A DNA stretch of 64,000 nt from Cyanophora paradoxa CCMP329 (GCA_004431415.1 QPMI01000712.1:5685-69684); one strand, 5' to 3'; shown: positions 23,733-50,573, counted from the first letter of the stretch. Notes: a model not told the origin generated them from the sequence alone. Translations and numbers: made by a program.

Positions 23733-25145
23733 TCGCGCAATGGGGTGTGGTACTGACGGGCCGCCGTCGCCGAAGAGGGGAACGTCAAGGGGTCCTCGAC
23801 GTCGTCAAATCCCAACATGCGTGCCGCGCAGACGCGAAGCGAGGCGAGGTAGCTCTGCTCATACGGTGTGCACGGTGTCGAACCGGAGATGACGCTGGCT
23901 GGCGGGAGCGGTGCCGTCCGCTTGAGGCGAGGTCGCTTCCGCGTGGTTGTCCGCCTGTGCACGTTCATGAGGACGTCCGTCGCGGCGAATGGGCGTGCCC
24001 TGCAGGGAGCTGCCGACAGACGCAGCGGGGGCCGGTGATTGCGCATTGTGGCTGAAAAGTATCCGACGCCAAGGATGGGCTTGCAGTCGGCGTTTGCGAG
24101 CTTGTTGAGGTGGCGGTTGCTGGGCCAGCCATAGTGAATCTCGTTGATCGCGTCAACTTCGGTCCCCGCTGCGCCATCCCGTCGTTCAGCCGGCCGGTAG
24201 CCAGGCCCTCCGGGGATCGGAACGGGATGGCTTCGCGGTGGCGCGAGAGAGACGCCCGGAGATATTTGACGAGTTGGGGCCAAGCGTGGCGGAGGCGCGT
24301 GTCGCGTTGGAGTACGTGCCGCTCGTAGAAACGTGTCCGTTGAGCGTCATGACTACGGAAGTCATTGTGGAGGACCACGTCCCACGCCGCGAGGCCGATT
24401 GAATTGAGGATGAAGGCCGCCCGAGTGAACAAGGCGCGAGTGAAAGCGAGGTCGGCTGACAGGCCCTGAGAGGTTGTGAAATCCCACCGAAAGTTCTCGA
24501 TCTCGTGGAGCGTCTCCAGGATTGCGTGGGCGTTGAGTTGGTGAGACCGCTGAAGCGGCGACCAGTCGTACAAGTGATAACTGGCAGCGAATTCAGGGTC
24601 CTCGAAGGCACGGTGTCGCGCGGACGTGATCCGCTCGTAGTCCGGTCCCCGTCCAGAGTAGAGGAGCCAGCAGCCCATCGTGAGATCCGTCGACGTCCTG
24701 GGATTAGTGAGGTCGTTGTATGCGATCGTGTACGTGTGCTGCCGTGTGAGCGGTCCAAGGAGGCCGTGGGGGCGAACGCGGACGACTGCACGCGCGAGGC
24801 TAGGCTCGGCGTCCCGGCCGACGGGGTCTCCGATGGAGCTACGGACTCGGCGGTGGAGCCACCACTGTCCGAGCTGGAGTCGTCGCCGTCAGAGGTTCCC
24901 GTCGTCTCGGTCCCCGTAGGACTACGACGCGGAGGCCTGTTACTGCCAGATGGCTTGAAGACAACACCCTGGATGTGACCGAAGCGTGCCAGTCCCGTCG
25001 GCTCGTTGGTGCGCAGATCCTTGAAGTCGGTCGACCAGACGACGAAGGGTCGGACAAAGGGCTTGCGCGCAATCCCAGGGTTCCGACGAATGTACTCGTC
25101 CGTGCCCACGAGCTTGATCTTGCCGTCGAGGCGCGGGTCCCAAAT
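23733..25145 (-). CDS. C-terminal part of the gypsy pre-protease (gag-position) ORF, unknown function
   Basis: Chain of overlapping ORFs 24186-25160, 23965-24678 and 23729-24283. The first codon ATT (25145-25143) is in frame with TAC (52260-52258). Confidence 0.6.
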
Positions 25146-25460
25146 TCGGGGTTTGCGCAATTAAGCGTAAACCGAGTTTTGCGCCGACGGAATGAATAGA
25201 AGAGAAGCCAGAGCGCCAACTGCCTACCTTAGCTAGAAGGACCGAGCGACCGGACCGGCCTAAGCGACGGGTCCGGGCCTCGAGCACGGTATAGCAGAAT
25301 TCGAGTTCTGCACCGACTCCGGGGAGAACTCAGAATTTGATTCGGTCGCGCCCTGAGGCGAACGAAGGCCGGGGTACGGCCATTCCTTCGGCTGCCCTTC
25401 GGCATAACTTCGTCCTTGGTTGCCAGCTTGACCAGGCACCCAGCGGCGAAGCGAAATCGC
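25146..25460 (+). repeat. Repeat A (315 bp), left end of copy 1
   Basis: Same sequence as 30492-30806 and 51342-51656. Confidence 0.92.
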
Positions 25461-26140
25461 CACAGCCAGTTCATACCACCTGCGTTCAGCATGACGCAGC
25501 CGAACGCACCCGAATCGGCGATTCCGCCGACCGGCCACGCCAGCCTGCAGTGGAGCAAGCTAGCTCAGCGCTTCTTCTCCAAATCCCCTGCGGCGGGCGC
25601 GATCCAGCGAACCTTGCTCGATCCGTGGCCTGACGGCGTTCAGTCTTCCTGGATGATGCCCTGGCAGTCCGACGGATCCTCTCAGTCGCTCTTGGACTCT
25701 TACAACTGGGGCTTCCTAAAGCCCGGTACGCTCGTTCTCGGCCCGGCCGCCCGTCGGTTAGAAGATCTTCGACCGGCTATCTCGGGGCCGTGCCGCCAAC
25801 CGCGGCCGTGCACTTAGAACCCTAGCCCGAGCACTATCTCAGAAGAGTCTCGCTCGTTTAAGTGTCTGAGCCCGACAGCCCTTCCTTTTCTTTGTTTTCC
25901 CCTTCTCGATTCCGTCGCGACGCACACTTACGCATCTCGCGCATGGCCTCGCGACGGCTGGGTCGACGCGGCGATGACGGGCGCGACGAACTCCGCCTCG
26001 AAGCCGCCCCGACCACACCCGCGCCGCCATGCCCTGCCTGACATGCCGGCGGCGCGGCGCAGATGACGGCGGCCACCGAGCGAGAGAGCCAAAAACGGTG
26101 GCGCTCCAGGACCTCGGCGGCCGCCATCATCATACCTTGC

Positions 26141-26780
26141 GCGGTGTCCCGGCAGAGCCCGGCGCGCACACCGGCAGGAAGGCGGAGCGGCTCGCGGCCG
26201 GCGCGCCGGCGAGCCCCGCAGAGCGTCGAGGCACGACTGCGTGCTCCGCTTTCTTCCCCTGTGCGATGTCCCGGCGGAGCCCGGCGCGTACATCGACAGG
26301 AAGGCGGCGAGACCCACCGGCGCGCCGGGGTCTCCCGCGGGACGTCGAGGCACGGGTCGCGTGCTCCGTCCCACCTCGCGCAGTGCCCCGGCGGAGACCG
26401 GCGCGTGCACTGGCGAGAAGGCGGAGAGGCTCGCGGCCGGCGCGCCGGCGAACCCCGCAGAGCGTCCAGGCACGCCCGCGTGCTCCGCTCCCCTCCTTTT
26501 TTCCCTGTGTGATGTCCCGGCGGAGCCCGGCGCGTACATCGACAGGAAGGCGGCGCGACCCACCGGCGCGCCGGCGGGCCCCGCGGGACGTAGATGCACG
26601 GGCCGCGTGCTCCGTCCCACCTCGCGCAGTGCCCCGGCAGAGCCCGGCGCGCGCACTGGCGAGAAGGCGGAGAAGCTCGCGCCCGGCACGCCGGCGAGCC
26701 CCGCGGGACGTTGAGTCACAGTTACGTGCTCCGTCCTCTCCCGCGCGGTGCCCCGGCGGAGCCCGGCGCGCGCACCGGCG
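26141..26780 (+). repeat. ~120-bp tandem repeat (~5.3 units) inside predicted intron 1, copy 1
   Basis: Recurring GT(G/C)CCCGGC(A/G)GAGCCCGGCGCG...GTGCTCCG units. Confidence 0.85.
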
Positions 26781-29700
26781 AGGCAGCGGCGTTCCCCGTC
26801 GGCTCCGACGGCAGACCCCGCGAGAGTCGACGCGCGCCGCACCGCGCTCCTCTATCTAGCCTCCCGCCCTCCCCCGCCACGCCGCAGCCGCAACACACCG
26901 GCTGACACGGCCCCGCGCAGATAAGGACGCCGGCAGCGGCAGCAAGGCGATGAGCGTGTCCGCCTCCATGATCATCGACTACTGGCGCCACGCGCCCGAA
27001 CCGCATCGCCTCCTCTTCTGCGGCGACTGCGCGACGACGGCGGGGATCTTCCCCCCGTTCCTCTCCAGCGGCACGCTCGACGGCGGTCTCATGGTGGGCC
27101 GCCCCCGTCACGCCTGCATGACCCCCCGCTCGCTTATTAACCGACGGCCTGACAGTCTCGCCCGGCGGACGCGTCAACCATGCTGGTCACTTCTCTCGTC
27201 CCGATCATCGCTTTCGCGGTCGACGAGGCTAGTTTCTACGCCGTCGCCCCGTGTTCTTCCGACCCCACCAGCCCTGGCTACATGTCCGCATGCCCCGCCT
27301 CTCGACGTCACGCGTTAACCGCGATCGCCAGCGACTACTCGGCGGTGCGCGACTCGGTTCCGCGGGAGCTGTTCAACGAGGCGGTACTCCGCTTCGGCGA
27401 GTCGGCCGCCGTACTCCTGGCTACCTTCGGCGCCACCTGCCTCGAGGTCACGGAGTTCTACGGCTACAAGTACGGCACCATCCCTGTCGGCCTCCCGCGA
27501 GGGTTCCCGATTTACTACGACGACATTCCGTGCCGGTACGCCACTCCTCGCTCACCGTGCCGCGCCCCTCACCCTCCACAGTGACTGGGCGGCCCTCGAA
27601 CCCTGGGAAAAAGTGACGGCGCTCGGTGCGCTCACTCAGCTCTACGCCTGGTCCCCCGAGTCAGTCCCCAAGTACTCCAAGACGGCGGTAGCCGACGCCC
27701 ACGGCTGGCTCCGGCCCTTGCTTGTCACCTTCATCGAGAAAAGCAAGGCGCTCTCCCGCGATCACCGCAAGATCCTGCGCAACGACATCGTCGCCGCCTT
27801 CGGCCTGGCCCCGGTCCGGCCCGCGTCTCTCCAAAACGCGAGTGGCCGGCATCTCTTCCGGGCGGCCTGACAGTCGGCACCGTCCCCTTCGGAAAAGTCC
27901 GCCCGCCGCGCGCTCGCTGCACGCCAGCGCACTCAGCGGTCGCCCGCTTCGCAGTTCTCGTTCGCCGACTTCTCTCGCGCTTGCGGCTTCCACCCGGCCC
28001 ACTGGGACGCCTCCGCGGTGCTGCGCGACTGGGACCAGCCGGCCCACAAGGCCGTCAGCCTGTACTTCCCCCACATCTTGAAGGCGGCGGAGGCCGCGCG
28101 AAAACGCCGCGGCGCCGCGGCCTCGGGCGACGCCGACGCTGCCACCGCCGCCACCGCCAGCGCACCCCCAGCGGACCCCAAGTCGGTCCGCGCACACATT
28201 ACCCCCTCTCGCCTCGCCCACGCTCGCTGCCGATGCTTCTTTTTTCGCGGGCAGCGAGCACGGGCTCCGAAGGTGGCACATGGAGCGGCCGCGGCCCCCT
28301 CGGCACCCCCTCCGGCCCAGAAGCGCGCCGGTGCGCTACCCACCCCCGCTCATTTTTTACCGCCGCCCACCCCGCCGCGCAGGGGCAGCCCCGCCCACCG
28401 GCCTCGCTCCTCCGCGCCGCCCCGCGCCTGCCAAGCCGGCGGCTGCGGCCGGGAACACCGACACCGCCGACGCGGACGCGGACGACGACGTCGACCGCCC
28501 GCGCGCCTCGCGGTCGACCCGCCCGCCTAAGCGGACCAAGGCGACCGAGGCCTCGGCCCCGAAGGCCCCCCCGGCGCCCGCAGACTCAGCCGACGAAGGC
28601 GGCGAGTCAGACGCCCCGCCTTCACCCGCCGAGGAGGCGGAAGCACAGGCCCCGCCACCCAAACCCGCCAAGAGCCGCAAGGCCAAGACCGGTCCGTCCA
28701 CGCGCCCGCTGGCCTCCCCGGCGGCTCACCCCCGCCTAGGCGACCCCCTTGAGATTCGCCTGGCCCGACTTTCTGACCCGGCCCACTTCACCGCAGCCGA
28801 CCGCGACAAGGCCCTGCAGTTCGCCGAGACCCGCGACCTTCCCACGCCGAACCCGGCCCCGCGGTCTCCGACCTGCCGCCCGTTCCGCCGGCCAACCCGC
28901 AGGCGCTCGCGGCGTCCATGCTGCAAGCCGGCCTCGCCAGCATGGCCGGCGGCGGCCCGCCTCCCCCGTTCTGGCCCGCGGGAGTTCCGTCCCCGTTCCT
29001 GCAGCACCAGCAGCAGCCCCGCTACTCGGCCGCTTCCACGGTCACGCCAGCGGGCTGGGTCGTCCAGGCGCCCCCGCATTTCGCGGCTCCCTGGCCCTCC
29101 TCCGGCACCGCCAACCACGGCGCCGGCATGTTCCCGGGCTTCGGGGGCCCGCAGACCGACTGGTTCGGCCCCGCCGACCCCGGCTTCCGGATGCCGCCCG
29201 CCGGCCCGCAGCTCCCGCCCCGGCAGGCCGCTTCCCACACCGCCGCGCCACTCGCCGCCGGCCCCCGTGGGGTCCCCGCCGCCCGCTCCGGCAGCCGCGG
29301 GGCCACCCAGGCCGCGCAGAAGCTCGCCCCGCCCGCCGCCGCAGCGCCGACAGAGCAGCCCCCGACCTCATCCTCCACCCGCGCCCGACCGTTCGTCCCC
29401 AGCGACGCGGAGATGGAGGACGAGGCGGAATCCGACGCCCCCGGCGACGAACCCGCCGGCGAGGACGACTGGGCCGGCGACTGGGACTCGGACGACACCT
29501 CGACGCCGCAGGACGCCAGTCCCCACGTCGACGCTCCCTCCGAGTCCGGTACGGACTCGTGGCCGCCGCAGCCCAAACCCTCCCTCCGTCACACTGACCC
29601 GGGATCGTGCAGAATCCGCTGCCCCAGTGTACTTGTTGGACCGTTCAGATCGTGCAGAATCCGCTACCCGGGCGGCTGAAGGTCCGTTGGACTTGTGGGG

Positions 29701-30491
29701 CGCGGCGCGCAGGCCGGCCCAGGAGTTCGAGACCGGCGTCATGCGGCGCAGCGTCCGTGGCGCCGGCGTCAGCGGGGCCAGCGCTGGCGTGCACGTAGGC
29801 ACTGGCGCGGAAGCTAACTGCGAGGTACGCGGCCGTGCGCGTGGCTGGTACGCGTCCGGATCCGTACGCGGGGCTCGTACGACAGCTCTCGGCGTCATGC
29901 GGCGCGGCGTCCGCGGCCGAGCTCGAGGCACCGGCGTTGGCGGGGCTAGCACTAGCGTGGGCGCCGGAGCTAGCTGCGAAACCTGCAGTGGTAGTATCGG
30001 TGCTATAGCTAGGCGCCGGCACGCGACCGGACGCAGGGTTGGTGGTACTAGCTATAGTGCAGCTATTAAAGCGCCAATCGCGGATTGCGGAGGTATTGGG
30101 CCGCTTCGATTCCTTCGAATCATTGCCCGACTCACCGGTCGCATGAATAGAAAAAACTGTTCGCGTTGGAGTGTTTTGACGGCACGCGGCGGGGGTACCG
30201 GTAGGCGCAGTTTCGTCCGGGGCCCTGAGACGTTCCGACCGGAAGGGGAGGCTCCACCGGCCACTGCAGTAGGCGGCGGCGCTGATGTGGCTTCCGTGCT
30301 CCAGTCCAGCGATCAGGTTCTGGAGCATGCCGTAGCGCGGTCTAGCGAACGTGGTCCAGGAGGTGCTCCAGATGTAGACACGGCGACTGAGCTGCGAAAG
30401 TACTTGCGCGGCCTGCTGGATGCCGAGGCGAACAGCGCGGCGTGGAGCGGCAGCGACAGTAGCATCAGTACGGGGATTGGCCCCTCGCTGC

Positions 30492-30806
30492 TCGGGGTTT
30501 GCGCAATTAAGCGTAAACCGAGTTTTGCGCCGACGGAATGAATAGAAGAGAAGCCAGAGCGCCAACTGCCTACCTTAGCTAGAAGGACCGAGCGACCGGA
30601 CCGGCCTAAGCGACGGGTCCGGGCCTCGAGCACGGTATAGCAGAATTCGAGTTCTGCACCGACTCCGGGGAGAACTCAGAATTTGATTCGGTCGCGCCCT
30701 GAGGCGAACGAAGGCCGGGGTACGGCCATTCCTTCGGCTGCCCTTCGGCATAACTTCGTCCTTGGTTGCCAGCTTGACCAGGCACCCAGCGGCGAAGCGA
30801 AATCGC
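30492..30806 (+). repeat. Split direct repeat A1
   Basis: Same 315-bp sequence as A2 (51342-51656). Confidence 0.92.
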
Positions 30807-30836
30807 CACAGCCAGTTCATACCACCTGCGTTCAGC

Positions 30837-33800
30837 ATGACGCAGCCGAACGCACCCGAATCGGTGATTCCGCCGACCGGCCACGCCAGCCTGCAGTGGA
30901 GCAAGCTAGCTCAGCGCTTCTTCTCCAAATCCCCTGCGGCGGGCGCGATCCAGCGAACCTTGCTCGATCCGTGGCCTGACGGCGTTCAGTCTTCCTGGAT
31001 GATGCCCTGGCAGTCCGACGGATCCTCTCAGTCGCTCTTGGACTCTTACAACTGGGGCTTCCTAAAGCCCGGTACGCTCGTTCTCGGCCCGGCCGCCCGT
31101 CGGTTAGAAGATCTTCGACCGGCTATCTCGGGGCCGTGCCGCCAACCGCGGCCGTGCACTTAGAACCCTAGCCCGAGCACTATCTCAGAAGAGTCTCGCT
31201 CGTTTAAGTGTCTGAGCCCGACAGCCCTTCCTTTTCTTTGTTTTCCCCTTCTCGATTCCGTCGCGACGCACACTTACGCATCTCGCGCATGGCCTCGCGA
31301 CGGCTGGGTCGACGCGGCGATGACGGGCGCGACGAACTCCGCCTCGAAGCCGCCCCGACCACACCCGCGCCGCCATGCCCTGCCTGACATGCCGGCGGCG
31401 CGGCGCAGATGACGGCGGCCACCGAGCGAGAGAGCCAAAAACGGTGGCGCTCCAGGACCTCGGCGGCCGCCATCATCATACCTTGCGCGGTGTCCCGGCA
31501 GAGCCCGGCGCGCACACCGGCAGGAAGGCGGAGCGGCTCGCGGCCGGCGCGCCGGCGAGCCCCGCAGAGCGTCGAGGCACGACTGCGTGCTCCGCTTTCT
31601 TCCCCTGTGCGATGTCCCGGCGGAGCCCGGCGCGTACATCGACAGGAAGGCGGCGAGACCCACCGGCGCGCCGGGGTCTCCCGCGGGACGTCGAGGCACG
31701 GGTCGCGTGCTCCGTCCCACCTCGCGCAGTGCCCCGGCGGAGACCGGCGCGTGCACTGGCGAGAAGGCGGAGAGGCTCGCGGCCGGCGCGCCGGCGAACC
31801 CCGCAGAGCGTCCAGGCACGCCCGCGTGCTCCGCTCCCTCCTTTTTTCCCTGTGTGATGTCCCGGCGGAGCCCGGCGCGTACATCGACAGGAAGGCGGCG
31901 CGACCCACCGGCGCGCCGGCGGGCCCCGCGGGACGTAGATGCACGGGCCGCGTGCTCCGTCCCACCTCGCGCAGTGCCCCGGCAGAGCCCGGCGCGCGCA
32001 CTGGCGAGAAGGCGGAGAAGCTCGCGCCCGGCACGCCGGCGAGCCCCGCGGGACGTTGAGTCACAGTTACGTGCTCCGTCCTCTCCCGCGCGGTGCCCCG
32101 GCGGAGCCCGGCGCGCGCACCGGCGAGGCAGCGGCGTTCCCCGTCGGCTCCGACGGCAGACCCCGCGAGAGTCGACGCGCGCCGCACCGCGCTCCTCTAT
32201 CTAGCCTCCCCGCCCCTCCCCCGCCACGCCGCAGCCGCAACACACCGGCTGACACGGCCCCGCGCAGATAAGGACGCCGGCAGCGGCAGCAAGGCGATGA
32301 GCGTGTCCGCCTCCATGATCATCGACTACTGGCGCCACGTGCCCGAACCGCATCGCCTCCTCTTCTGCGGCGACTGCGCGACGACGGCGGGGATCTTCCC
32401 CCCGTTCCTCTCCAGCGGCACGCTCGACGGCGGTCTCATGGTGGGCCGCCCCCGTCACGCCTGCATGACCCCCCGCTCGCTTATTAACCGACGGCCTGAC
32501 AGTCTCGCCCGGCGGACGCGTCAACCATGCTGGTCACTTCTCTCGTCCCGATCATCGCTTTCGCGGTCGACGAGGCTAGTTTCTACGCCGTCGCCCCGTG
32601 TTCTTCCGACCCCACCAGCCCTGGCTACATGTCCGCATGCCCCGCCTCTCGACGTCACGCGTTAACCGCGATCGCCAGCGACTACTCGGCGGTGCGCGAC
32701 TCGGTTCCGCGGGAGCTGTTCAACGAGGCGGTACTCCGCTTCGGCGAGTCGGCCGCCGTACTCCTGGCTACCTTCGGCGCCACCTGCCTCGAGGTCACGG
32801 AGTTCTACGGCTACAAGTACGGCACCATCCCTGTCGGCCTCCCGCGAGGGTTCCGATTTACTACGACGACATTCCGTGCCGGTACGCCACTCCTCGCTCA
32901 CCGTGCCGCGCCCCTCACCCTCCACAGTGACTGGGCGGCCCTCGAACCCTGGGAAAAAGTGACGGCGCTCGGTGCGCTCACTCAGCTCTACGCCTGGTCC
33001 CCCGAGTCAGTCCCCAAGTACTCCAAGACGGCGGTAGCCGACGCCCACGGCTGGCTCCGGCCCTTGCTTGTCACCTTCATCGAGAAAAGCAAGGCGCTCT
33101 CCCGCGATCACCGCAAGATCCTGCGCAACGACATCGTCGCCGCCTTCGGCCTGGCCCCGGTCCGGCCCGCGTCTCTCCAAAACGCGAGTGGCCGGCATCT
33201 CTTCCGGGCGGCCTGACAGTCGGCACCGTCCCCTTCGGAAAAGTCCGCCCGCCGCGCGCTCGCTGCACGCCAGCGCACTCAGCGGTCGCCCGCTTCGCAG
33301 TTCTCGTTCGCCGACTTCTCTCGCGCTTGCGGCTTCCACCCGGCCCACTGGGACGCCTCCGCGGTGCTGCGCGACTGGGACCAGCCGGCCCACAAGGCCG
33401 TCAGCCTGTACTTCCCCCACATCTTGAAGGCGGCGGAGGCCGCGCGAAAACGCCGCGGCGCCGCGGCCTCGGGCGACGCCGACGCTGCCACCGCCGCCAC
33501 CGCCAGCGCACCCCAGCGGACCCCAAGTCGGTCCGCGCACACATTACCCCTCTCGCCTCGCCCACGCTCGCTGCCGATGCTTCTTTTTTCGCGGGCAGCG
33601 AGCACGGGCTCCGAAGGTGGCACATGGAGCGGCCGCGGCCCCTCGGCACCCCCTCCGGCCCAGAAGCGCGCCGGTGCGCTACCCACCCCGCTCATTTTTT
33701 ACCGCCGCCCACCCCGCCGCGCAGGGGCAGCCCCGCCCACCGGCCTCGCTCCTCCGCGCCGCCCGCGCCTGCCAAGCCGGCGGCTGCGGCCGGGAACACC

Positions 33801-36281
33801 GACACCGCCGACGCGGACGCGGACGACGACGTCGACCGCCCGCGCGCCTCGCGGTCGACCCGCCCGCCTAAGCGGACCAAGGCGACCGAGGCCTCGGCCC
33901 CGAAGGCCCCCCGGCGCCCGCAGACTCAGCCGACGAAGGCGGCGAGTCAGACGCCCCGCCTTCACCCGCCGAGGAGGCGGAAGCACAGGCCCCGCCACCC
34001 AAACCCGCCAAGAGCCGCAAGGCCAAGACCGGTCCGTCCACGCGCCCGCTGGCCTCCCCGGCGGCTCACCCCGCCTAGGCGACCCCCTTGAGATTCGCCT
34101 GGCCCGACTTTCTGACCCGGCCCACTTCACCGCAGCCGACCGCGACAAGGCCCTGCAGTTCGCCGAGACCCGCGACCTTCCCACGCCGAACCCGGCCCCC
34201 GCGGTCTCCGACCTGCCGCCCGTTCCGCCGGCCAACCCGCAGGCGCTCGCGGCGTCCATGCTGCAAGCCGGCCTCGCCAGCATGGCCGGCGGCGGCCCGC
34301 CTCCCCCGTTCTGGCCCGCGGGAGTTCCGTCCCCGTTCCTGCAGCACCAGCAGCAGCCCCGCTACTCGGCCGCTTCCACGGTCACGCCAGCGGGCTGGGT
34401 CGTCCAGGCGCCCCCGCATTTCGCGGCTCCCTGGCCCTCCTCCGGCACCGCCAACCACGGCGCCGGCATGTTCCCGGGCTTCGGGGGCCCGCAGACCGAC
34501 TGGTTCGGCCCCGCCGACCCCGGCTTCCGGATGCCGCCCGCCGGCCCGCAGCTCCCGCCCCGGCAGGCCGCTCCCCACACCGCCGCGCCACTCGCCGCCG
34601 GCCCCCGTGGGGTCCCCGCCGCCCGCTCCGGCAGCCGCGGGGCCACCCAGGCCGCGCAGAAGCTCGCCCCGCCCGCCGCCGCAGCGCCGACAGAGCAGCC
34701 CCCGACCTCATCCTCCACCCGCGCCCGACCGTTCGTCCCAGCGACGCGGAGATGGAGGACGAGGCGGAATCCGACGCCCCCGGCGACGAACCCGCCGGCG
34801 AGGACGACTGGGCCGGCGACTGGGACTCGGACGACACCTCGACGCCGCAGGACGCCAGTCCCCACGTCGACGCTCCCTCCGAGTCCGGTACGGACTCGTG
34901 GCCGCCGCAGCCCAAACCCTCCCTCCGTCACACTGACCCGGGATCGTGCAGAATCCGCTGCCCCAGTGTACAGCGGCAAGGCGACGCGCGGCCACGCCAA
35001 GGAGAAGGCTCCCCTCGGTCCGCGCTGATTGTTTTCCGCGGTCGGCCACAGCCCGGCCGACATGCCTTTTTGCAGAGGCTCCGGCCCCAAGAAGGCGCGC
35101 GGCGACGACAAGGCGAAGGGCGCCACCGCCCAGGCCAAGGCGACGGCGGCAGAGAAGGCCGCGCCACCGGCCGAGCCCCCCTCGTCTACGAGGGCCTCCC
35201 CGAGCTCACGCTGCGCGAGACGGCCTTCGCCAAGCTCAACATTCCCTCCACGGCGGTCGACAACTCCGCCCGCGTCACGGACTTGGCCGCCCGTATCAAG
35301 GAAATCGAGTCGTGCTTCGACAACGCCGTCTTCCCGGCGACAGTCAGCAGCGACCCTTCCCCGACGAGCGCATCACCACGGCTCTTGCCAAGTACGGCAT
35401 CGCCTGCATGCGCGATCTGGCGCGCTTCTCCCACGGCCTGGTGCTGCGCGACATGGGCAACTCGGAACTCCGCCAGGCCATCGCGGCGTTCGACCAGGTC
35501 GGCGACGTCATCAACCGCCTACCCGGCGGCCCGACCGGCCCCTCGGCCAACTCCTGACGGACTGGAACGCCCTCACCCGCCCGGTCTACAAGAAGCTTCG
35601 GGACATCGCCCAGACGTCGGCGGTGCTCCAGGCCTGCCTCGAGGACGACCCGCTCTTCAAGCGTCTCCTCAAGCGGCTGCAAGACAGCGTGAGCGCGTGG
35701 ACGGAGCCACGGGAGCTACTGTCGTCCTACGGCCGGACGAGCCGCAAGCGGAGCTCCTTCTTCATGATGCCACCGCTCGCTCGCACGGAGCTTCCGCAGC
35801 CCCGCCCGGACAAGGCCCCACTCGCCCCACACTCTCCCATGCGGCGCTCTTCTCCCAGGCCTCGCAGGCCGGTCCGTCCGCCCCACCTGCTCCTCCGCCC
35901 GGACCGACCCTCGGTCAGCCCACTCCTACGGCGGCGTCGCGACCTTCTCCTACGACGACGACGGTGACGTCGAGGACCCCGGCTCCGGCGGGCCAACCCA
36001 CCGCGGCCAGCAGCGCGGGCGCGCCTGGAAGCAGGCCCGGCGGCAGTACGGGACTGCCCAGCCGGCCCAGCCCCAACCCCACCACCGTCAGCGGGGCGGA
36101 GGCCGCGGCGGCGCCGTCCAGCGGCCCCCCGGCGCAAGCCGCAGCCGCCGGCCGACGGCTGAGCCGCTTCCACTCCTGGCGCGGGTGTTTGCGGCGACAC
36201 CCCTCCGGCGGCTGCCGCCGACCGCAAGGGGCCCCCCGTGCCAGCCGTTCCCCCCGCCACGACCCTTCCAGTAGACTGTGA
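30837..36281 (+). CDS. Spliced ORF1 (gag position) of the YR retrotransposon, roughly 1,250-1,300 aa, ~8 introns; 3' end approximate
   Basis: GT-AG introns at 31072-32267, 32441-32502, 33160-33219, 33531-33598, 33674-33724, 34032-34078, 34888-34951 and 35018-35075 join otherwise separate frames. Intron 3 removes the TGA at 33214. A few homopolymer corrections are also needed. Confidence 0.65.
31487..32125 (+). repeat. ~120-bp tandem repeat (~5.3 units, alternating variants) inside predicted intron 1, copy 2
   Basis: Unit starts at ~31490, 31611, 31729, 31856, 31974 and 32093. Confidence 0.85.
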
Positions 36282-38419
36282 CCAGTCGCGTCCGCCGCCT
36301 GTACCGCTGTCTGTACCCTCGAGTACACCGCGTGTCTTTGTGCGCGACCCATTCGCAAAATTGCGAGCACTCGTAGCTGCACACGGGGACCCCGGCCCGT
36401 ACGATTTCGCGGCGGCCGCACAGAAGTTTCGGGCGGGGCAACTCCAGCATTACGCGCATGCCTGGCGGGCTTACTTCCGGCGGGCTGACACGACGGTCCC
36501 CTCGTGGGTGGGCCTCATCCTGCGCAAAGGCTTGCGCCTCCCACTCCAGCACGCCGACGGCACGCCGGCAGCGTCGTTAGCAGACATTCCCCGCACGCGC
36601 GCCGAGGGCCCACGCCCCTCGTGCCACCGGACCCCAGAACACGAAGCCTTCGTGGACAGCGAGGTCGCGGCGATGCTGCGCCTCGGCGTCACCCGCCTTG
36701 CCACCGAGGAAGACGAACAGCTCGTCGTTAACGAGTCTTCGCTCTTGGTGGTCGACAAGGCCGGCCCAGACAAGTTCCGCCTGTGCCTCGACGCCACCCC
36801 CGTGAACCCGTTCATCCGCTTGCCGACGTTCCGGTACCAAACACTGGACGAGGTTGCGTCCTACCTCACCCCCGGCTGCTGGCTCGTGAAGTTCGACCTT
36901 AAAAAAGGCTACTATCACATCGCCCTGAACAAGGACACCCAGCGCCTCCTGGCGTTCCGTTGGCGCGGCAAACTCTACATTTACCAGGCCCTTTGCTTCG
37001 GCGTGAACATCGCCTGCTTCGCCTTCACGAAGGTCACGCGCGCCTTTGCCAAGTACTGGGCAGCGCTGGGCGTGAAGCTCTGCACGTACATCGACGACGG
37101 CCTGTTCATCTGCCCGTCGCGCGAAATCGCGGAGCTCGTCTCCCAGCACCTACGTGCTTGCGCGCCCGAGCTAGGCATTACGTTCTCGGAAAAGTCCGAC
37201 TTCACACCGACCCAGTGCACCGAGTACCTCGGCATCGAGATCGACGTCCGTCCGACCGCGGCGTTTTCGCGGTGACCCCGAAGAAGGTCGCAAAAACGCT
37301 CGCCCGCCTCGCCGGCGTCCTCGACCGGGCGCCCGGCCCCCGCGGCCTCACGGCGTCGGCTCGCGATCTGCAAAAGCTGGCGGGCTCACTCATCGCGCTG
37401 CGCATGGCGTTCCCGGCCGTTCGTCTCATGACTCGGCCACTTTTCGGCCTCATGTCGACCTCGGACGCCCTCGCCGACCCCTTCAATCAGTCGGCCGTCA
37501 CCATCGAAGGCCCAGCACTCGACTGCCTCCGCTGGCTCCAAGCGGCCCTCCAACGCCCGGAGCGCCCGGCGCACCCCATCTGGACGCCTCGGACCTTCTT
37601 CCGGCTGTTCACGGACGCCTCCGGCTACGGCTACGCCGCCTTCCTCGATCAGCTCGAGTCCGCCGACCCCACGGCCGTCCGCCAACGCCCCGCGTGGTCC
37701 GTCTTCGGCACCTTCCCCCCCGAACTCCGCGCGAGCGAGGGCCCCATGCGGTGCGGCGAGACCAGCAGCAACGAACGCGAGCTTCGCGCGATCGTGGCCG
37801 CCGCGGACGAGCTCTTCCCCGCCCTTCCGGTGGGTGCGCACGTTCTCATCCGCTGCGACAACCGCTCCGCCGTCGCGGCAGTCGCTCGGGGCGGCGGTTC
37901 GGCCCGCCTCTTTGACCTGAGCGCTCGCCTCTGGCACCGCTGCGCGGCTCTCGGCGTCTCGATCTCCGCCCGCCATTTGCCCGGCGCGGCCAACGTCTTC
38001 GCCGACCGCGGTTCCCGCGACGGCGCTCGCGCCCCGTCGCTGCATCGGGCCCTCCTCTCGCGGTGCCGCACGCACCTAGACGCCCCGCTTGCCGAGCACC
38101 ACCACGTCGCCTTCGAGGACGATCCGTGGCTTGGCAGCGTCCGCGCGAGCGCCCCGACCGTCCTTACGGTCGACTCCCGGCTGCGCGCGGCCCTGATCGC
38201 TTCCCTCCGACGCTTCCCAGCGTCCGGCCCTCTGGGCCTCCTGCTCCCCTCCCAGCCCAGCACCACCTGGTCGGTGGCCCTCGGGGAGCTTCGCCTCACC
38301 CCCGCCCCGCCGCCGTCACCTCTTTCCCGCTTTCTAGCCTCCCGTCCCACATCTTCTACTCTGGGCGCATCGGCCTCGGCTCCTCCCGCTGGCCCCTGGA
38401 ACTGACCTTCTGGCAGTAA
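36238..38419 (+). CDS. DIRS-type reverse transcriptase-RNase H with a possible degenerate methyltransferase-like C-terminus
   Basis: RT: KFRLCLD, KFDLKKGYYHI, LCFGV..ACFAFTK, YIDD, YLGIEID. RH: LFTDASGYG, SNERELRAI, RCDNRSAV, HLPGAANVFADRGSR. The tail LLLPSQPSTTWSVAL resembles the DIRS MT-like motif. Frameshift at ~37250. Confidence 0.9.
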
Positions 38420-39301
38420 CCCCGGCGCCCGCGGAGGCGGAGCTCGCGGCCTGGCAGGGGGCGGCCTTCGCCCCCGGCACGTCAGCGGGCCAACGGCGGG
38501 CGGCCCGCCGCTACTTCGAGTTCGTCGAGTGCCACGGCCTCGCGCCGGACGCAGAACGGTCCATCCTCCTCTTCCTGGCCGACGCGGCCACCCAGCGACG
38601 CCGCCATTCCGGAAAAGACCTCGCGGCGAGCACCGTTAAAGGCCTCGCCGCCCACGTGTGGCGCGAACTCAAACTTCGCGGCCTCGTCGACCCCACCAGA
38701 CCCCGCTCGTTCATGTACTCGACCGCATGGAGAGGCATGCAGGCCCGCCTGGGCCGCCCCGTAGCGCAACGCCGCGCCTTCTTGCCCGGCGACCTGCGCG
38801 CGTGGTTGACCACCCCATCGTTCCTGTCACGCGCCCCTCCCCGGCGCCTCCGCGACGCCACCGTCCTCGCGACCGGCATCGCGGGCTTCCTCCGGGGAGC
38901 GGAGCTGGTGGCGCTGCGGGTCGACGACCTCGAATTCTCACTCCTCCCTTCCCCCGCATCGCCCTCCACATCCGGCGCTCCAAAACCGACAGGACCGCCC
39001 ACGGCGCGGTGGTTTACCTCACCCCGGGCAAATGCCCGCCTCGTGCCCCGTCCGCCTGCTGTGCGCGTACGTCGCGAGCACGGCGGTGCAGGCGGCGCCC
39101 GGGACCCCCTCTTCCCCCGCCTCTCCGATCCCGCCGCGGCCATCACCGTTGGTTTCGTCCGCCGCCTCGTGAAAGAGGCCGCGGAGGCCATCGGCTACGA
39201 CCCGACCGACTTCTCGGGCCACAGCTTGCGCCGCGGTGGCGCGACGGCCGCGGCCCGCCGGGGCCTCCCGGCCACTTGGATCCGACGGCATGGCCGCTGG
39301 G
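38404..39301 (+). CDS. Tyrosine recombinase, 5' part (interrupted by the virus); start not defined
   Basis: GFLRGAEL (Arg box), IRRSKTD (Lys, across a frameshift), SGHSLRRGGAT (HxxR), RHGRW. Confidence 0.9.
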
Positions 39302-39544
39302 AAAAAATGAGAGTACCCCCATCAGGGTGGGCCCGCCCTCTTTGCCACCCTCAACCCCCAAACCCACCCCTCACTCACCCACTCCAGCGCCTTCCCAGCC
39401 CTCATTCTTTCCCACTCTCTCGCTACGTCTACCGCCCTTCTCTCCCTCTGGTCTACCTCCCCTTCCATCCAGCAACCACTAGGTAGTATCTAGTGTCTAG
39501 GTCGATCGATATTGCAAAACGATATAGCAGTGAATTGAGGCGGG
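39302..39544 (+). repeat. Left terminal inverted repeat of the virus (~243 bp; homology resumes for ~27 bp after an indel)
   Basis: AAAAAATGAGAGTACCCCCATCAGG...GAATTGAGGCGGG is the reverse complement of 50324-50567, with about 3 substitutions. Confidence 0.95.
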
Positions 39545-39717
39545 AGCGTCAGCCAGAAGGCTTCCTGCTCTTCGAGCCCCAAACGCGCCGGTCTTTGAAT
39601 CACCAACGGGTCACCGCAATTGAGGTTTCTCTTATTTTGTCTTAAAGAGATCCCTTTCCAATATTGCTATGTGAAGTTGCGTTTGGAACAAGCAAAAAAT
39701 TGTGATATATACTTCCA

Positions 39718-42700
39718 ATGGACGTTACCCAAAATAATGCAGCGACTCGGCGCTTCCGGTTGGCCAGAATCAAAGACCAGATCGAAGCGCTCGCGATTTC
39801 ATTGTATAATCGACGCGTCATACATGGAGCTTTCAAAAATAAATTGATTAGAATTTCAGCACAAGGGTCGAGAACACGGTTTGCAACTTTGGAAAAGTAC
39901 GCTTCACTTTTGAACGAACTTGCAAGACTTCCTAGGTCAGCGCGTCCTGTGTCAGGTCGTCGACTAGAGCTAGCGATTGCTGAGGGCCAGGCCGACATTG
40001 TTCGAGGGTTCTCAGAATTACCTGAGGTTGACGGTGGAGATGATGTTCAAATCAATGACAGCAATACGACTACAGCGCTTGACGGGCGATATGCGGAGTG
40101 GAAATACCAATTGCTCGCGGTTCTGGCCGCGTAACCTCGATGCAAGCCCGATTTGAGAACAACGAACTTTTCAAACAGAACGCAATAGCATTCGTTAGCG
40201 CCCAGGTAAATCTTGCAGAGGCGGTAAGAATGGGCATTGCACTACAAATCTCTGGATTAGCGGTATACAGAAAGCCAGAGACTGATACAACAATTGCAAT
40301 CATTATTGAGCATCGTCGTTTCGATCGCATCGAGCCAGGGCAAGCATCGAGACTGCTCTGCGCTCACAGCTGGAAGAACTAGACATTCTTGCGACAGAGA
40401 AAAGCAGGGATTCCTCAGTTTTCGACACATGGATACATCTGGTCTTTAAAACTGTGCGATACTTCCGCCGCATGGTGGTCGTGGACGTAGGTTCATACTC
40501 CCGCGGTGGCTTGTGGAGAAGCAGGCACTCATCAATATCGATGCTCCGAACAATGAATGCTTCAAGTATGCTGTACTTGCAGCTCAGCACGCGCTACGAC
40601 CGGGCCAGGATTCACGCAGTGCTTGTCATTATCGACCGTATGAGAGCTCTTTAGACTGCACTATGCTCACATTTCCCACCCCGCTAGATTCAAAGGTTTT
40701 CAAAAAGTTCGAGCAGGCTAACAACGTAAACCTATGTATTTATACGACAGCATTAGATGAACAGGACATTGTACCAATCCATATCAGCGCAGCAAAAGAC
40801 GCAATACCAATCTTGTATGTACCTGCAGGCAGCGACAATGATGTAGGGCATTATCTCTGGATCAAGAACATCTCACGTCTGTTTGGAAAACATGATTCTC
40901 CGCCAAACACTATTGTCTTGCGTGTCAAACAGGTTTTAGCTCAGGTGCTGCGTTTGAGAATCATCTTAAATATGACCGTTGCCTCGATCGAGACGAGCAT
41001 GCGAGAGATGTTCTGCCTAGAAAAGGAGCCCACATCCAGAAGTTTATTAACTATGAGTACTCAATCCGGCAACGTCTGGTCGGATATGCTGATTCAGAGA
41101 CGATTACAATGCCGATTCCCTGCATTAGTGGAAAGACCGAAAAGAAAGGTGTGCATGTGATTGCTTCAGTCGGCTGTCTGGTTGTATCTTCGAAAGGTGA
41201 ACAATTTTGTTTCAAATACATGGGTTCGGAGAGCGAGGACTGCGCTGAGAAGTTCGTGCAATGGTTGGACGAAATGGAACCACAATTTCGAGAGCTCTTG
41301 CGAGAGACTGCACCAATCCAGATGACTCAGGAAGAGGAGCAGCGTTTTCAAACGAGGACCGAGTGCTACATGTGCACGGACACGTTCAAGGATGCGAAAG
41401 ACAAGCACCGCGATCACTGCCACGATTCTGGACGATACCTCGGGCCGCCTGCAGAGCGTGCAATCGGCGTCGCGCAAAGGCAGCAGCCGTTCCAATATTC
41501 TGGCACAATGGTCGAGGATTTGACTTCCACCTGCTCGTGCGCGCTCTAGCATCTGGCTATAATCGCCGTTTAGCAGTTTGGAAGGAGTTTCAAGCACATG
41601 TCGAAAGCGAGTTTGAAAGCAAGTACGGTGGACGTGAGATGACCCCAGAGCAGAAAAAGAAGGTGAAGAAGGGGCTCGAACGCCGGCTCCGCCCGCAGAG
41701 TCTCCTTTCGATAAAATTCGATCAGTTCTTTCAGAATAGCGAGCGAATTTCGCAGTTCAAGTATGGAATTTACGTTCTACGCGACTCGGCTCAGCACTTG
41801 AATGCAAGCTTGGACGAACTAGCAAAGGCTCTGCCCGCGGAAAAGAAGAAGATCACGCGCTCGCTGCATCTGGACGAGACTCAGTTCAAGCTGATGACAG
41901 GCAAAGGCATTTACCCTTATGATTACATGACGAGCTGGGCTCGCTTTCAAGAGACTAAACTACCTGCACGTCGTTATTTCAAAAATCAGCTTAAACAGAA
42001 GAAATGCTCGAAAGATGAGTACGCACATGCCAAGGATGTTTGGCGAGAGCTCGGCTGCAGAATGCTATCAGACTATACAATGGAGTATATGATGACAGAT
42101 ATCACGTTACTAGCGACGTGTTCGAAAACTATCGCGATACGTGTATTGAAACGTATGGCCTAGATCCTAGCTATTTTATGTCATCGCCGGATTTGCTTGG
42201 CAGGCAGCACTTAAGCACACTGGAGTGAAGCTCGAGCTCTTTCACGAGGACAGCAGGATATGCACAGATTTATAGAATCGGGGATCAGGGCGGAATCTCA
42301 ATGATCTCAAAACGCTACGCACAAGCTGAGAACAAATATTTGAGCATAAAGTTCAACAAATACACCCACGCTGTTGAGCCTACAGTCTCACAGTCTACAT
42401 GCATGTCTAACTACTACCGAACACACAAGGAATCGTGGCTCATGTACCTCGATGCAAACAACTTGTACGGCGTCGCAATGAAGCGCAAGCTACCCACAGG
42501 AGATTTCCGCTGGATAAACTAGATCAAGACGTCGATGTAATGCAATACGTTGCAAGCCTTGACGCGGATGGAGCTCGTGGCTATGCTCTCGAAGTCGATA
42601 TGTACATGCCTGAGCATCTCCACGACGAGTTCTCAGACTATCCGCTGGCCCTGAACGGATGTGTGTGTCCAAGGAACACCTATCAAAGCGACAACAGGAT

Positions 42701-43761
42701 ATGATTAACGACGAGAAGCTTACCTCAGTTGAACGAACTCCAAAGCTCGTTCCGAATCTGCTTCCAAAAAAGAATTATGTTGTTGATGGACGCTTGCTTC
42801 AGCTCTATACGTCACTGGGAATGATAGTAACCAACATCCATCGGGTCCTATCGTACGAACAAAGCGCATGGCTAGGGCGTTTCATAGATCTCAATACTCA
42901 AAAACGTAAAGAATCGCAGTTCACATACCAGAAGGACCTTTACAAGTTGATGAACAACAGTGTCTTCGGAAAGACGATGGAGAACGTGAGAAAGCACTGC
43001 TTTTCAGAGCTTGTGACTTCGGGAGACCGTCTGGTGAAGATCAACAGCGAACCAAATCCGTTGAAGCAGGTGGTGATGTACGAAGAGAACTTGTATTCGT
43101 TTCCAAGCGCAAAAGTGAGTACAATCTGAACAAACCTATCTACTGCGGGTTCGTCATCCTCGAACTTTCCAAGCTGCACATGTACCGCTTTACTACCAGG
43201 TGCTCAAGCCGCTTTGGGCCAGCGGCTGACACTATTAGGTACGGATACTGACAGTCTCATCATCGCGGTTCGCACCAAAGATATCTATGCTGATTTACGC
43301 TCAATCAAGCATGAGCTGGATGTTAGCGACTACCCAGAGACACATCGATTCTTCGATGGCATGACAGCCGATGAGGTTCGAGCTCTACGATCGATGGGGA
43401 AAACTCCGGGATTATTCAAGGATGAGCTCCATGGTCTGCAAATGACAGAGTGGATCGCTAACCGGCCGAAATCTTACTATTATTCGCGTGAAGATTGCAC
43501 GGACAAGCAGGTATGCAAGGGTATTCAAAAGACGTACTACAACAGACTCACAAGGGATGTATTCCTCCGGTGCGTCTGTCCTAAAGAGGGAGAAAAGCAA
43601 TCGTATGACATCAAAGGAATTCTCGGTTTCCGCTCGAAACAACATGAGATTTATTTACAACGAACCTCGCGCCAGGCTCTCCATCCCTTGATACCAAACG
43701 CTTCCTCGAGACTGACGGGATCAACACCCGAGCGATTGGCCATTATAAAAATCGCGCCTGA
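39718..43761 (+). CDS. polB: Protein-primed family B DNA polymerase, with N-terminal terminal-protein/OTU-like region and endonuclease VII-like insertion (multiple apparent frameshifts)
   Basis: INIDAPNNECFKYAV; ExoI YADSET; CYMC..RDHCHDSGRY..CRACN; ExoII HNGRGFDFHLL; RDSAQHL; KGIYPYDYM; motif A YLDANNLYG; motif B KLMNNSVFGKTMEN; motif C GTDTDS; GLFKDE; ends DTKRF..GHYKNRA-TGA. Confidence 0.93.
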
Positions 43762-43770
43762 TTTACAACG

Positions 43771-44860
43771 ATGTACCAGATTACTGCGCCACGGGTGCGT
43801 GGCAAATTGACGTGCTGTTCATTGGGAGATTTCGCCTGTTCGCAGCGGTCGAGATTGCAACCCGTTTCGCTGTGGTACGTAAGCTCGAGACTTTTAAGCA
43901 GCTTCCAAAAATGATCGAGCAGCTACCTGGAATATGGGGCTTTTCAGGAGACAACGGCTTCAACACAGCGGCAATTCGGGAAATGGCTGAAGAGAACTCG
44001 TTGAAAATGCATACTGATGTGGCTAAGGATGATCACATTTCAAAAGGCTCCAAGCTGGGAATTATCGACAGGTTCGCGAGGACATTGCGAGCACTGATTC
44101 AGACTGATACAGAAGCTCGTGGCTCCCGCATTTCCTCTCACGTTTGCCGGCAATTGTCAAGGCGTACAATGAAACAGCCCACAGCTCTTTCGGCGGGGAG
44201 CACTCACCGAAGTGGATGCGGGAAAATACACAGGTAGCCGAGCAGCTGCATCAAGTTAGACAGCGACAGAACGATATTGAACGAGACAATTCGAACATAC
44301 CGCGCACAGGGACCGAAGTGCAAGTTCTCGAGCCGAAGCCAAGCGTTTTTGCGAAGGGAACCACAAAGCCAAGCAAGGAGACGTACATAGTTGCTGGCGC
44401 TGATAAGAACCGTGTTCGACTCGTTACGAAACAGGGTGTGGAAATTTCTAGACGTGTTAAACCATCGGAAATACGTCAACCGCGTGAGCTTGCACCTCAA
44501 ACACGAATCGAAAAAGAAGAAGTGCAAATGCGACAGCAGAGACGATTGAGACGTGAGGGTTTGATCGAAACGAAAAAATACAGCGGCCAAAGCCGGCAGT
44601 ATCGAGAGCTCAAGAAGCTTGAGATTGCAGGGGAGCCAAGCTACGAGCAGGTGCTAAAGCTGCATCACCTCGAGCTCTACAGAAGCTCCGCTCTTCGCGA
44701 GGCATCTACGCGCAATAGCATTCCTGTGGTACTCCCGGATCCGATCAGGATTCTCAGCTCGATACTTCGCTGTGATGGCAAGCTGTTTCAAACGGTATGT
44801 TTCGTTCGTGTGGCGCAGTTTGCGATTGCGTTCAGCATTCTTTCTGCGTCGCTCTGCTAA
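43771..44860 (+). CDS. Retroviral-like (rve) integrase of the virus; 3' end uncertain
   Basis: WQIDVLF, FSGDNGF, LGIIDRFARTLR, IVKAYNETAHSS; consistent with the 6-bp TSD; two apparent frameshifts. Confidence 0.85.
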
Positions 44861-44998
44861 AATCTCCGGGGTGACCTCGATCGGTTTAGGACCCTTCTTC
44901 TTCGGCTGATAAGGCTCCATTGTTAAAAGACGAACCTTAGGAGGTCGCCCACGGCCACGTTTAACCGCAGCGCAATCCGCAGTAATTGCAGAAGTCAT
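44654..44998 (-). CDS. Small basic viral protein with an AT-hook
   Basis: KRGRGRPPK followed by an Arg/Lys-rich helix (ERRRKNAERNRK..KYRAENPDRIREY). Confidence 0.65.
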   Translation of the reverse strand: MTSAITADCAAVKRGRGRPPKVRLLTMEPYQPKKKGPKPIEVTPEILAERRRKNAERNRKLRHTNETYRLKQLAITAKYRAENPDRIREYHRNAIARRCLAKSGASVELEVMQL

Positions 44999-45129
44999 TG
45001 TTCGGCTTGTCTCTCAATAATAAGAGACATAAATCCTTTTAAGACAAATTAGCGCGACTTTTGAGGCTTAAAGATAATGCAATCTGTAGATGTAACAAAA
45101 AAGTCGCAGACAAGCAGCTCGCTGCGCAG

Positions 45130-45660
45130 ATGGAGGTTATCGTTCCTGATGTACCAGAGGGCACTGCTTTGATCCCGCTGATAGGAATTCGCAATCGACG
45201 CAAAGTCATCGTCGCCTACGCTCTCGTGTCACACGATGATGCTGAGCGTGTGCTGGGATTTCGCTGGAGTTTGGACAATGGATATGCTCGAGCCAAAATC
45301 AACGGAAAGAGCGTGTACTTGCATACATTCATCAGTGGCAATCTTGAGAATGGGTTGACGTTAGATCATATCAACAACGATCCAAAAGACAATCGTCGCG
45401 ACAACCTCCGTTTAGCAACAGCTCGTCAACAGAATTTGAATCGTGGACAGCGGCGAGATAACACTTCAGGATACATTGGCGTCAGCTTCCATCAGCAACA
45501 TGGTAAATGGAAAGCATACTATAAGATAAATGACCGCCAAAAGCACATCGGTCTGTTTCAAACAGCAGAGGCTGCAGCTCGTGCTCGCGATGCATATGCA
45601 TTGGAACATACCAGCGAAGAGGACAAACCATTCTTGCGGTTGAACTTCCCACAGGTTTGA
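45130..45660 (+). CDS. HNH-AP2 homing-endonuclease-like protein
   Basis: YLHTFI, LDHINNDPKDNRRDNLR..QNLN (HNH); NTSGYIGVS..GKWKA..HIGLFQTAEAAARARD (AP2). Confidence 0.9.
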   Translation: MEVIVPDVPEGTALIPLIGIRNRRKVIVAYALVSHDDAERVLGFRWSLDNGYARAKINGKSVYLHTFISGNLENGLTLDHINNDPKDNRRDNLRLATARQQNLNRGQRRDNTSGYIGVSFHQQHGKWKAYYKINDRQKHIGLFQTAEAAARARDAYALEHTSEEDKPFLRLNFPQV

Positions 45661-45721
45661 ATGAAGGGAATAACACCCCTTGGGCGCAGCCGAGGCAGCT
45701 TGTCTGCCGATTATTTTTTTA

Positions 45722-47817: not shown

Positions 47818-47861
47818 TTGCTATTATAGACCAGAAAATTTTCATGCATATTGTTGTAAAG

Positions 47862-48757: not shown

Positions 48758-48764
48758 TTAAAAG

Positions 48765-50567: not shown

Positions 50568-50573
50568 GCTGGG

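Follow-up and report, generated by a model that had tools for sequence, protein, structure and literature searches.

Probable sense-strand introns in the first open reading frame of a Ngaro-like retrotransposon of Cyanophora paradoxa

Retroelements are expected to lose introns that lie in the sense orientation, and the known exceptions, namely Penelope-like elements, the Ogre long terminal repeat (LTR) retrotransposons and retroviruses, carry one or few of them. In Ogre, in the splicing of gag in copia/BARE and in that of env in retroviruses, protein output depends on the balance between spliced and unspliced RNA, and it is the unspliced form that serves as the template for copying; these systems use one intron or a small number of splice events. 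Here we analyze a 64,000-nucleotide stretch of the Cyanophora paradoxa CCMP329 genome (GCA_004431415.1 QPMI01000712.1:5685-69684; hereafter the window, with positions counted from its first letter), which contains two copies of a retrotransposon of the DIRS order. Copy 2 is a ~10.5-kb, Ngaro-like element with the layout A1-ORFs-B1A2B2, in which A and B denote split direct repeats. Our subject is its first open reading frame (ORF), ORF1, which lies on the + strand, has a candidate first exon at position 30837 and appears to be interrupted by about ten short introns.

The kangaroo element of Volvox is another member of this order with split direct repeats. The Ngaro/PAT-like elements, such as the Ngaro of Cafeteria burkhardae (PMC8547959), share with the Cyanophora element the order ORF1, reverse transcriptase (RT)/RNase H (RH) and tyrosine recombinase (YR), of which the RH and YR are weakly matched here, the A1-[ORFs]-B1A2B2 arrangement, a GC-rich composition and nesting with a virophage/Polinton-like element. 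They are 6-7 kb long as opposed to ~10.5 kb here, and differ further in that the Cyanophora ORF1 covers ~5.4 kb of genomic sequence with apparently about ten sense introns; in the searchable literature we found no description of introns in DIRS/Ngaro elements. The nesting is also reversed: in Cafeteria the Ngaro elements are nested inside virophages (PMC8547959), whereas here the virus-like element sits within the retrotransposon. Penelope-like elements resemble the Cyanophora element in that spliceosomal introns persist in their genomic copies, among them a 5' intron close to the promoter region; however, they belong to another RT clade, possess a GIY-YIG endonuclease, insert by target priming and usually have one or a few introns, their ORFs being mostly uninterrupted (PMC8557442; Arkhipova et al. 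2003). The Cyanophora element, in contrast, belongs with the recombinase elements and has its many apparent introns in a single gene. It likewise departs from Ogre, BARE and the retroviruses, since its template RNA would have to escape splicing at every one of some ten short introns that look constitutive.

We estimate at roughly 65% the probability that the ~5.4-kb ORF1 region is a multi-exon gene for an orphan protein of ~1,100-1,250 amino acids, with about ten short (46-104 nt) host-type GT-AG introns in the sense orientation and possibly a 1.2-kb 5' intron, that the downstream pol is intronless, and that copies of the element keep the introns.

Probable splice junctions in the ORF1 region

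The 2019 assembly of C. paradoxa has a GC content of 67.6% and was built from PacBio RSII reads with Canu, followed by Quiver and Illumina polishing, with uncovered areas staying as PacBio sequence; its genes, modeled by BRAKER1 with RNA-seq, average 9.2 introns with a mean length of 86 bp, and the genome paper mentions neither DIRS elements nor retrotransposons (PMC6704402). When exon 3 was searched against 1.84 billion representative proteins, it matched only two, both of them C. paradoxa Augustus models in EukProt, and a further search with cluster look-ups yielded 11 isoforms from seven loci, both window copies included. One of these, P0006 (tig00022104_g23823.t1), is encoded by copy 2 with 857/862 residues matching, and P0007 (g23822.t1) by copy 1 with 703/704 residues matching, copy-1-specific sequence included; P0007 and P0011 are isoforms of the copy 1 gene model g23822. 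Because P0006 and P0007 are encoded exactly by its two copies, the window corresponds to contig tig00022104 of the 2019 assembly. Cafeteria burkhardae, a candidate host in view of its GC content of ~70%, its Ngaro elements and its endogenous virophages, was rejected on the grounds that C. paradoxa models are the sole homologs and that two of these fit the window exactly. The models g23822 and g23823 (annotation of Price et al. 2019; EukProt EP00741) thus describe the same locus and already contain introns 2, 4, 5, 6, 7 and 8 of the list below; they differ from our account in being annotated as anonymous multi-exon genes with no retrotransposon label, and they include obvious error-bypass introns. 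P0001, from a second locus on another contig, fuses ORF1, RT/RH and YR in one model. Copies that are ~99% identical are found on at least four contigs. No relatives of exon 3 were found in viral contigs, and no short proteins were found to match the exon 3 ORF or the piece of a public model across junctions 7 and 8.

An earlier note, made by a model from the sequence, had proposed eight introns in this region, numbered 1 to 8 below. All eight segments do begin with GT and end with AG at the positions given, as U2-type spliceosomal introns do, and introns 2 and 3 do share the acceptor GGCCTGACAG followed by TC. The features under discussion are as follows (GC3 denotes the GC content of third codon positions).

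30837-31071, + strand: candidate exon 1; 78 codons plus 1 nt with an ATG start, in a phase compatible with exon 2
31072-32267, + strand: candidate intron 1; 1196 nt, codon periodicity absent inside, CTGAC 15 nt before the 3' end
32441-32502, + strand: intron 2, well supported; 62 nt, joins frame 2 (GC3 0.95) to frame 1, TTAAC 15 nt before the 3' end
32631-32678, + strand: additional candidate intron, absent from the earlier list; 48 nt, donor GTCCGC, TTAAC 13 nt before the 3' end
32882-32927, + strand: additional candidate intron, absent from the earlier list; 46 nt, GTACGC...CACAG, CTCAC 10 nt before the 3' end
33160-33219, + strand: intron 3 as first drawn; 60 nt, TGA at 33214 in the frame common to both flanks
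33531-33598, + strand: intron 4; 68 nt, T6 run 10 nt before CAG, boundaries in 6/7 loci
33674-33724, + strand: intron 5; 51 nt, T6 run, QKRA joined to GAAPP in frame 1, at least 6/7 loci
34032-34078, + strand: intron 6; 47 nt, alternative acceptor at 34135 (104 nt), donor in 7/7 loci
34888-34951, + strand: intron 7, well supported; 64 nt, PSES joined to ESAAPVY, CTGAC 15 nt before the 3' end
35018-35075, + strand: intron 8, well supported; 58 nt, in-frame TGA at 35026 after EKAPLGPR, 5/7 loci
35872-35918, + strand: additional candidate intron inside exon 9 as listed; 47 nt, GTCCGT...GGTCAG, CCGAC 11 nt before the 3' end

Introns 2, 4, 5, 6, 7 and 8 are probably real. Their boundaries are shared by public models, which were trained on C. 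paradoxa and informed by RNA-seq, across up to seven loci, whatever the local frame errors: those of intron 2 occur in all six loci that cover the site, and intron 7 produces the same +1 frame change in all seven, one of which uses another acceptor. This bears directly on the possibility that ORF1 is (nearly) one continuous ORF and that introns were drawn to bridge homopolymer errors in an unpolished repeat, a reading which we consider unlikely. Such errors vary from copy to copy, whereas the frame changes at 32441-32502 and 34888-34951 (+1) and the TGA codons at 33214 and 35026 are common to between two and seven copies. Certain segments, moreover, are spliced out by the models even though they are in frame and free of stops, as is the case for 32631-32678 in six of the seven loci and for intron 6 in copy 1.

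Intron 6 may also provide a link to expression. In copy 2 its removal joins frame 2 to frame 1 and eliminates a TAG that is in frame there; copy 1 contains one additional C, and the models splice at the same place. In four loci, copy 1 included, there are t1/t2 isoform pairs whose sole difference is the 19-residue segment GDPLEIRLARLSDPAHFTA, which corresponds to 34079-34135 (57 nt) between the acceptors 34078 and 34135, with the donor 34032 used in both isoforms. By default, BRAKER1 runs Augustus in such a way that alternative isoforms appear only when RNA-seq hints suggest them. Given these defaults of BRAKER1, the pairs would point to spliced-read support for both forms of intron 6. The idea that intron 6 is false, based on the open reading through copy 1 with the TAG out of frame, was dropped in view of these four isoform pairs at the acceptor and the frame link in copy 2.

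Composition and motifs furnish a second line of evidence against the homopolymer explanation. In 7 kb of coding sequence there are only three T-runs of five or more; they are found in introns 4, 5 and 8, with 10-30 nt separating each from the CAG that follows; T6 runs and codons ending in T or A are foreign to coding sequence with a GC3 of ~0.9. The T content of intron 4, at 0.25, exceeds the background of 0.147 and places it in the top 4% of windows, and that of intron 8, which has T5 and T4 runs and a CCGAC 15 nt before its 3' end, is 0.26; the GC/AT composition of introns 2, 3, 6 and 7 is unremarkable. Branch-like motifs (YTNAY or CYGAC) with the A placed 10-15 nt from the 3' end, a fixed distance from the acceptors, precede 8/13 candidate acceptors as opposed to 8/111 other YAG sites (P=7e-7), a test that is supportive but not decisive because the motif was defined after the data had been seen. 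Among the eight acceptors first listed the figure is 5/8 (P=9e-5, with the same post hoc motif); the earlier note had reported branch-like motifs at several introns. A dynamic programming gene model that allows homopolymer slips scored 19 nats better with introns than with slips only; this model and a four-state coding hidden Markov model are too coarse for introns of 50-70 nt, and recovered only intron 2 and several donors.

The remaining junctions are less uniform. Candidate exon 1 has a GC3 of 0.75-0.82, compared with a GC content of 0.50-0.57 at its first and second codon positions, and the acceptor of intron 1 at 32267 is used by P0002 and P0003 (two loci); exon 1 and the donor at 31072, however, are used by none of the 11 isoforms from the seven loci, and this part of the model as listed is unsupported. 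Within candidate intron 1 lies a tandem repeat (31480-32127) of 119 bp x5.4, also readable as 245 bp x2.4. The first exons of some public gene models are placed in this repeat. In the region of intron 3 the in-frame TGA at 33214, which the intron was said to delete, is indeed there, but no public model uses the acceptor at 33219: models of the window copies splice 33160-33300 and those of other loci 33243-33300, depending on the length of a C-run. An intron is needed somewhere in 33160-33300. Three further introns, at 32631-32678, 32882-32927 and 35872-35918, are likely. The second of these is found in models of 5/7 loci, with variants in the other two; GC3 periodicity is lost there, and if the C-run at 32853 is as long as it is in copy 1 (an extra C) and in most other loci, the intron becomes necessary. 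The third is used by models of three loci and replaced by 35689-35917 in three others, with a change from frame 1/0 to frame 2 at this point.

Introns 1-7 were said to be present in copy 1 too, and they lie in the duplicated part of the element (25146-29632 = 30492-34971, 99.6% identity), so that both window copies keep them; models elsewhere, which are protein models and not DNA, read into intron 3 and need the same junctions.

Homopolymer errors and rival readings

Over 4.5 kb the two window copies differ at 16 positions, comprising 13 one-base indels in C-runs and three substitutions, all of them C/T and two at CpG. Relative to the window, models from other loci shift frame at further C-runs, for example at 32853, 33156, 33511, 33639, 33762, 33908, 34196, 34737, 35086, 35178, 35333, 35539, 35817, 36078, 37254, 37981, 39035 and 39106. 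The pattern is consistent with homopolymer errors that persist from the long reads in repeats beyond the reach of short-read correction, at a density of about one per 350-700 bp in these repeats. The RT, RNase H and recombinase frames are broken by C-run indels as much as ORF1. In pol the frame switches at 37254, 37981, 39035 and 39106 all fall on C-runs and P0001 is continuous across them; it is for this reason that pol looks intronless, as the earlier note had it for RT/RH. These indels will corrupt any ORF call at 25146-39300 and 51525-63833, and because of one-base homopolymer errors in a PacBio-based assembly the exact exon model is not fixable from this sequence.

This explains why the eight-intron ORF as originally drawn is wrong in detail. 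The five junction peptides quoted for it are right locally, but many of the frame breaks that intron removal was supposed to mend are one-base C-run indels. Instead of an open product of ~1,250 amino acids, joining the exons yields 1279 codons, those at 1174 and 1239 being stops, and exons 5, 7 and 8 together with parts of exons 6 and 9 fall in Arg/Pro-rich non-coding frames, against the third-position GC signal. The joined model is broken because of C-run indels in both window copies. Removal of only introns 2, 3 and 7 from copy 2 also leaves it free of stops, and given so high a GC content a stop-free reading is uninformative.

Several observations weigh against spliced introns in ORF1, and some of them favor the homopolymer explanation. 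The donor motif described as host-like, GT[ACG]CG[CGT], occurs 18 times in 4.0 kb of ORF1 and 14 times in 3.0 kb of pol, so that its density is no higher in ORF1 than in pol, and the 139 GT..AG pairs of 45-70 nt counted in the ORF1 region are as dense as the 97 counted in pol. Since both are as dense in pol, the bare observation of such segments is not beyond chance. Introns 4 and 5 in copy 2 lie in a stretch where frame 1 is open across them, and no stop forces their removal; in copy 1 the reading is open through introns 5 and 6. The introns of the public models are in themselves no proof, because Augustus also invents introns that bypass frame errors (34201-34281, 33831-33988, 36186-37068 and 38140-38993), including in the intronless but similarly broken pol. 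The step from isoforms to RNA-seq hints depends on the default behavior of BRAKER1, an appearance of splicing could arise from reads of processed or deleted copies, and protein searches found no transcript-assembly peptides for ORF1. Finally, the insertions at the seven loci are perhaps not independent of one another, as adjacent pairs of models (g20294/g20296 and g23822/g23823) occur on two contigs.

This last point belongs to another alternative, which we judge improbable: the introns would be real, but ORF1 would be a host-derived, intron-bearing segment captured as DNA, with copies arising mainly by DNA-level duplication or recombination. In its favor, neither a Gag-like domain nor any other known one was found in the orphan ORF1, whose length far exceeds the norm for the order; copies 1 and 2 stand head to tail with copy 1 truncated; the models just mentioned form similar adjacent pairs on two contigs; and the 3' end of the element borders on a 6143-bp tandem duplication. 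ORF1 nevertheless lies within the A1...B1A2B2 boundaries and is followed by pol at the second locus represented by P0001, and at least four contigs carry ~99% identical copies, with substitutions of the CpG type as in young dispersed repeats. That the frame breaks and stops are true mutations in dead copies of a decayed family with no functional ORF1 is very improbable, for although the recombinase gene of copy 2 is split by an 11-kb insertion and copy 1 is truncated, only three substitutions separate the copies, exons and pol alike show strong codon periodicity, and both the indel-to-substitution ratio and the confinement of indels to C-runs fit sequencing error.

The element, its predicted proteins and its neighborhood

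Apart from the introns, the parts of the element and its insertion are the following.

25146-29632, + strand: copy 1 (A1 repeat, exon 1, introns 1-7); 99.6% identical to 30492-34971, truncated inside exon 8, then 859 bp of unrelated sequence
30492-30806, + strand: A1 terminal repeat of copy 2; 100% identical to A2 (51342-51656) and 99.7% to 25142-25460
35178-36276, + strand: C-terminal part of ORF1; helical domain, then RGG/Arg-rich tail, stop at 36274-36276; continuous in P0003/P0004
36238-37275, + strand: ORF with the RT match; RVT_1, E=2.2e-15, 57.4 bits against a cut-off of 29.6
36238-39301, + strand: pol region; RT 36238-37275, RNase H-like 37254-38405, N-terminal part of the tyrosine recombinase 38422-39301; introns not needed
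39302-50566, no strand assigned: Polinton/virophage-like insertion, not part of the retrotransposon; 11.26 kb, ~48% GC, within the recombinase gene
50567-50656, + strand: end of the recombinase gene; last 29 codons and stop, WALYSSVPQGYIEDYLFHLSSDLADLGF followed by the stop being the C-terminus of P0001
50841-52257, + strand: 3' split direct repeats; B1 50841-51341, A2 51342-51656, 102-bp spacer, B2 51759-52257, with B1 and B2 98% identical

The window has a GC content of 65-80%, except for a low-GC island at 40-50 kb. Self-comparison of the window locates the 315-bp repeat A at 25146, 30492 and 51342 and the 500-bp repeat B at 50841, 51759 and 57902. Copy 2 thus starts with its A1 at 30492, breaks off at 39301 and resumes at 50567 to end with B1-A2-B2 (50841-52257), a layout to be read with the caveats that a 102-bp spacer separates A2 from B2 and that B2 is also within a tandem duplication. 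The assignment to a DIRS-order retrotransposon on the + strand, made in the earlier note, is borne out by the RT, RNase H and tyrosine recombinase matches together with the split direct repeats. The RT_RNaseH match is weak (E=0.0015-0.0022, 19 bits, under the cut-off of 24.8; ORF 36960-38405 on the + strand), as are the Phage_integrase matches (E=7e-4 and 2e-3, under the Pfam cut-off), the candidate recombinase ORF (38656-39486, + strand) being broken by frame errors and by the 11-kb insertion. In a Pfam search, none of the + strand ORFs of the retrotransposon matched a DDE-type integrase or a protease. Likeness of the recombinase frame to its relatives breaks off at 39300 and picks up again at 50567. 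Copy 2 is dead, because the Polinton/virophage-like insertion splits its recombinase gene.

Within the order, two other labels were tried and set aside. A PAT-like assignment would agree with the split direct repeats, but no Dam/methyltransferase match was detected at E<=1 in 37254-38402 or 38422-39300, where the frames are broken and the absence is uncertain; Ngaro-like is the better label because no methyltransferase domain was detected. A DIRS1-like assignment needs inverted terminal repeats and an internal complementary region, and the terminal repeats of this retrotransposon are direct, the sole inverted pair (39302-39544 / 50566-50324) belonging to the inserted virus-like element.

The ORF1 protein starts with a globular part and continues through a long, acidic middle rich in Pro and Ala to a helical C-terminal domain, with an RGG/Arg-rich tail behind it. 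It has no Pfam or PDB match, and among the 1.84 billion representative proteins no homologs were detected outside C. paradoxa. In the window its C-terminal part is spread over three frames by C-run indels at ~35178, 35333, 35539 and 35817. A single-sequence AlphaFold2 (AF2) model of the helical domain is all-alpha and of low confidence (pLDDT 53).

The inserted virus-like element is bounded by 243-bp terminal inverted repeats (39302-39544 / 50566-50324) and a 6-bp target-site duplication, GCTGGG. It contains a polB-like ORF of the protein-primed type (41261-42163, + strand) and an A32-type packaging ATPase (45873-46589, - strand).

Further features were observed around the two copies. Directly upstream of copy 1, on the minus strand at ~17900-25150, is a Ty3/gypsy-type LTR retrotransposon with aspartyl protease (22968-23732), RT (21828-22472) and RNase H (20614-21330) domains. 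The 859 bp at 29633-30491, between the truncated copy 1 and the A1 of copy 2, have no similarity to the rest of the window, and the last two exons of the public model g23822 are placed there. The 6143-bp tandem duplication (51525-57668 and 57668-63833, 99.2% identity) begins within A2 and takes in B2 and a further 5.4 kb. Within these 5.4 kb the minus strand has an orphan ORF of 1240 aa (58336-62055) that matches nothing in Pfam, and in one of the two tandem units one-base C/G homopolymer indels break this long ORF. At 1-6000 the window has a GC content of 76-80% and ORFs of >1000 aa on both strands, with no Pfam match.

A possible partition of spliced and unspliced RNA

As genomic copies keep the introns, new copies would be made from unspliced transcripts, or else by DNA-level duplication. 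Spliced mRNA would yield the full-length ORF1 protein and, probably, the downstream pol. The division proposed in the earlier note, with unspliced RNA serving as the genome and spliced RNA as the ORF1 mRNA, is in this way inferred from intron retention. A stronger version would have an active family preserve about ten sense introns, together with at least one alternative splice site, each time it retrotransposes, with only unspliced nuclear RNA being reverse-transcribed and only spliced RNA being translated; we offer it tentatively, as a possibility that the retained introns suggest.

The locus also carries a warning for GC-rich genomes assembled from long reads, in which homopolymer errors in repeats produce frame breaks that readers and gene finders alike turn into false introns. 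If the stronger version is true, the family would show a retrovirus-like partition of its RNA with far more introns than any described retroelement, in a host whose own genes average nine. It would then have to be asked how the template RNA is kept from a very active spliceosome, and whether the introns aid expression of the mobile element or its evasion of surveillance in an intron-rich genome: in such a host, introns might allow the element to be expressed, or to escape from silencing.

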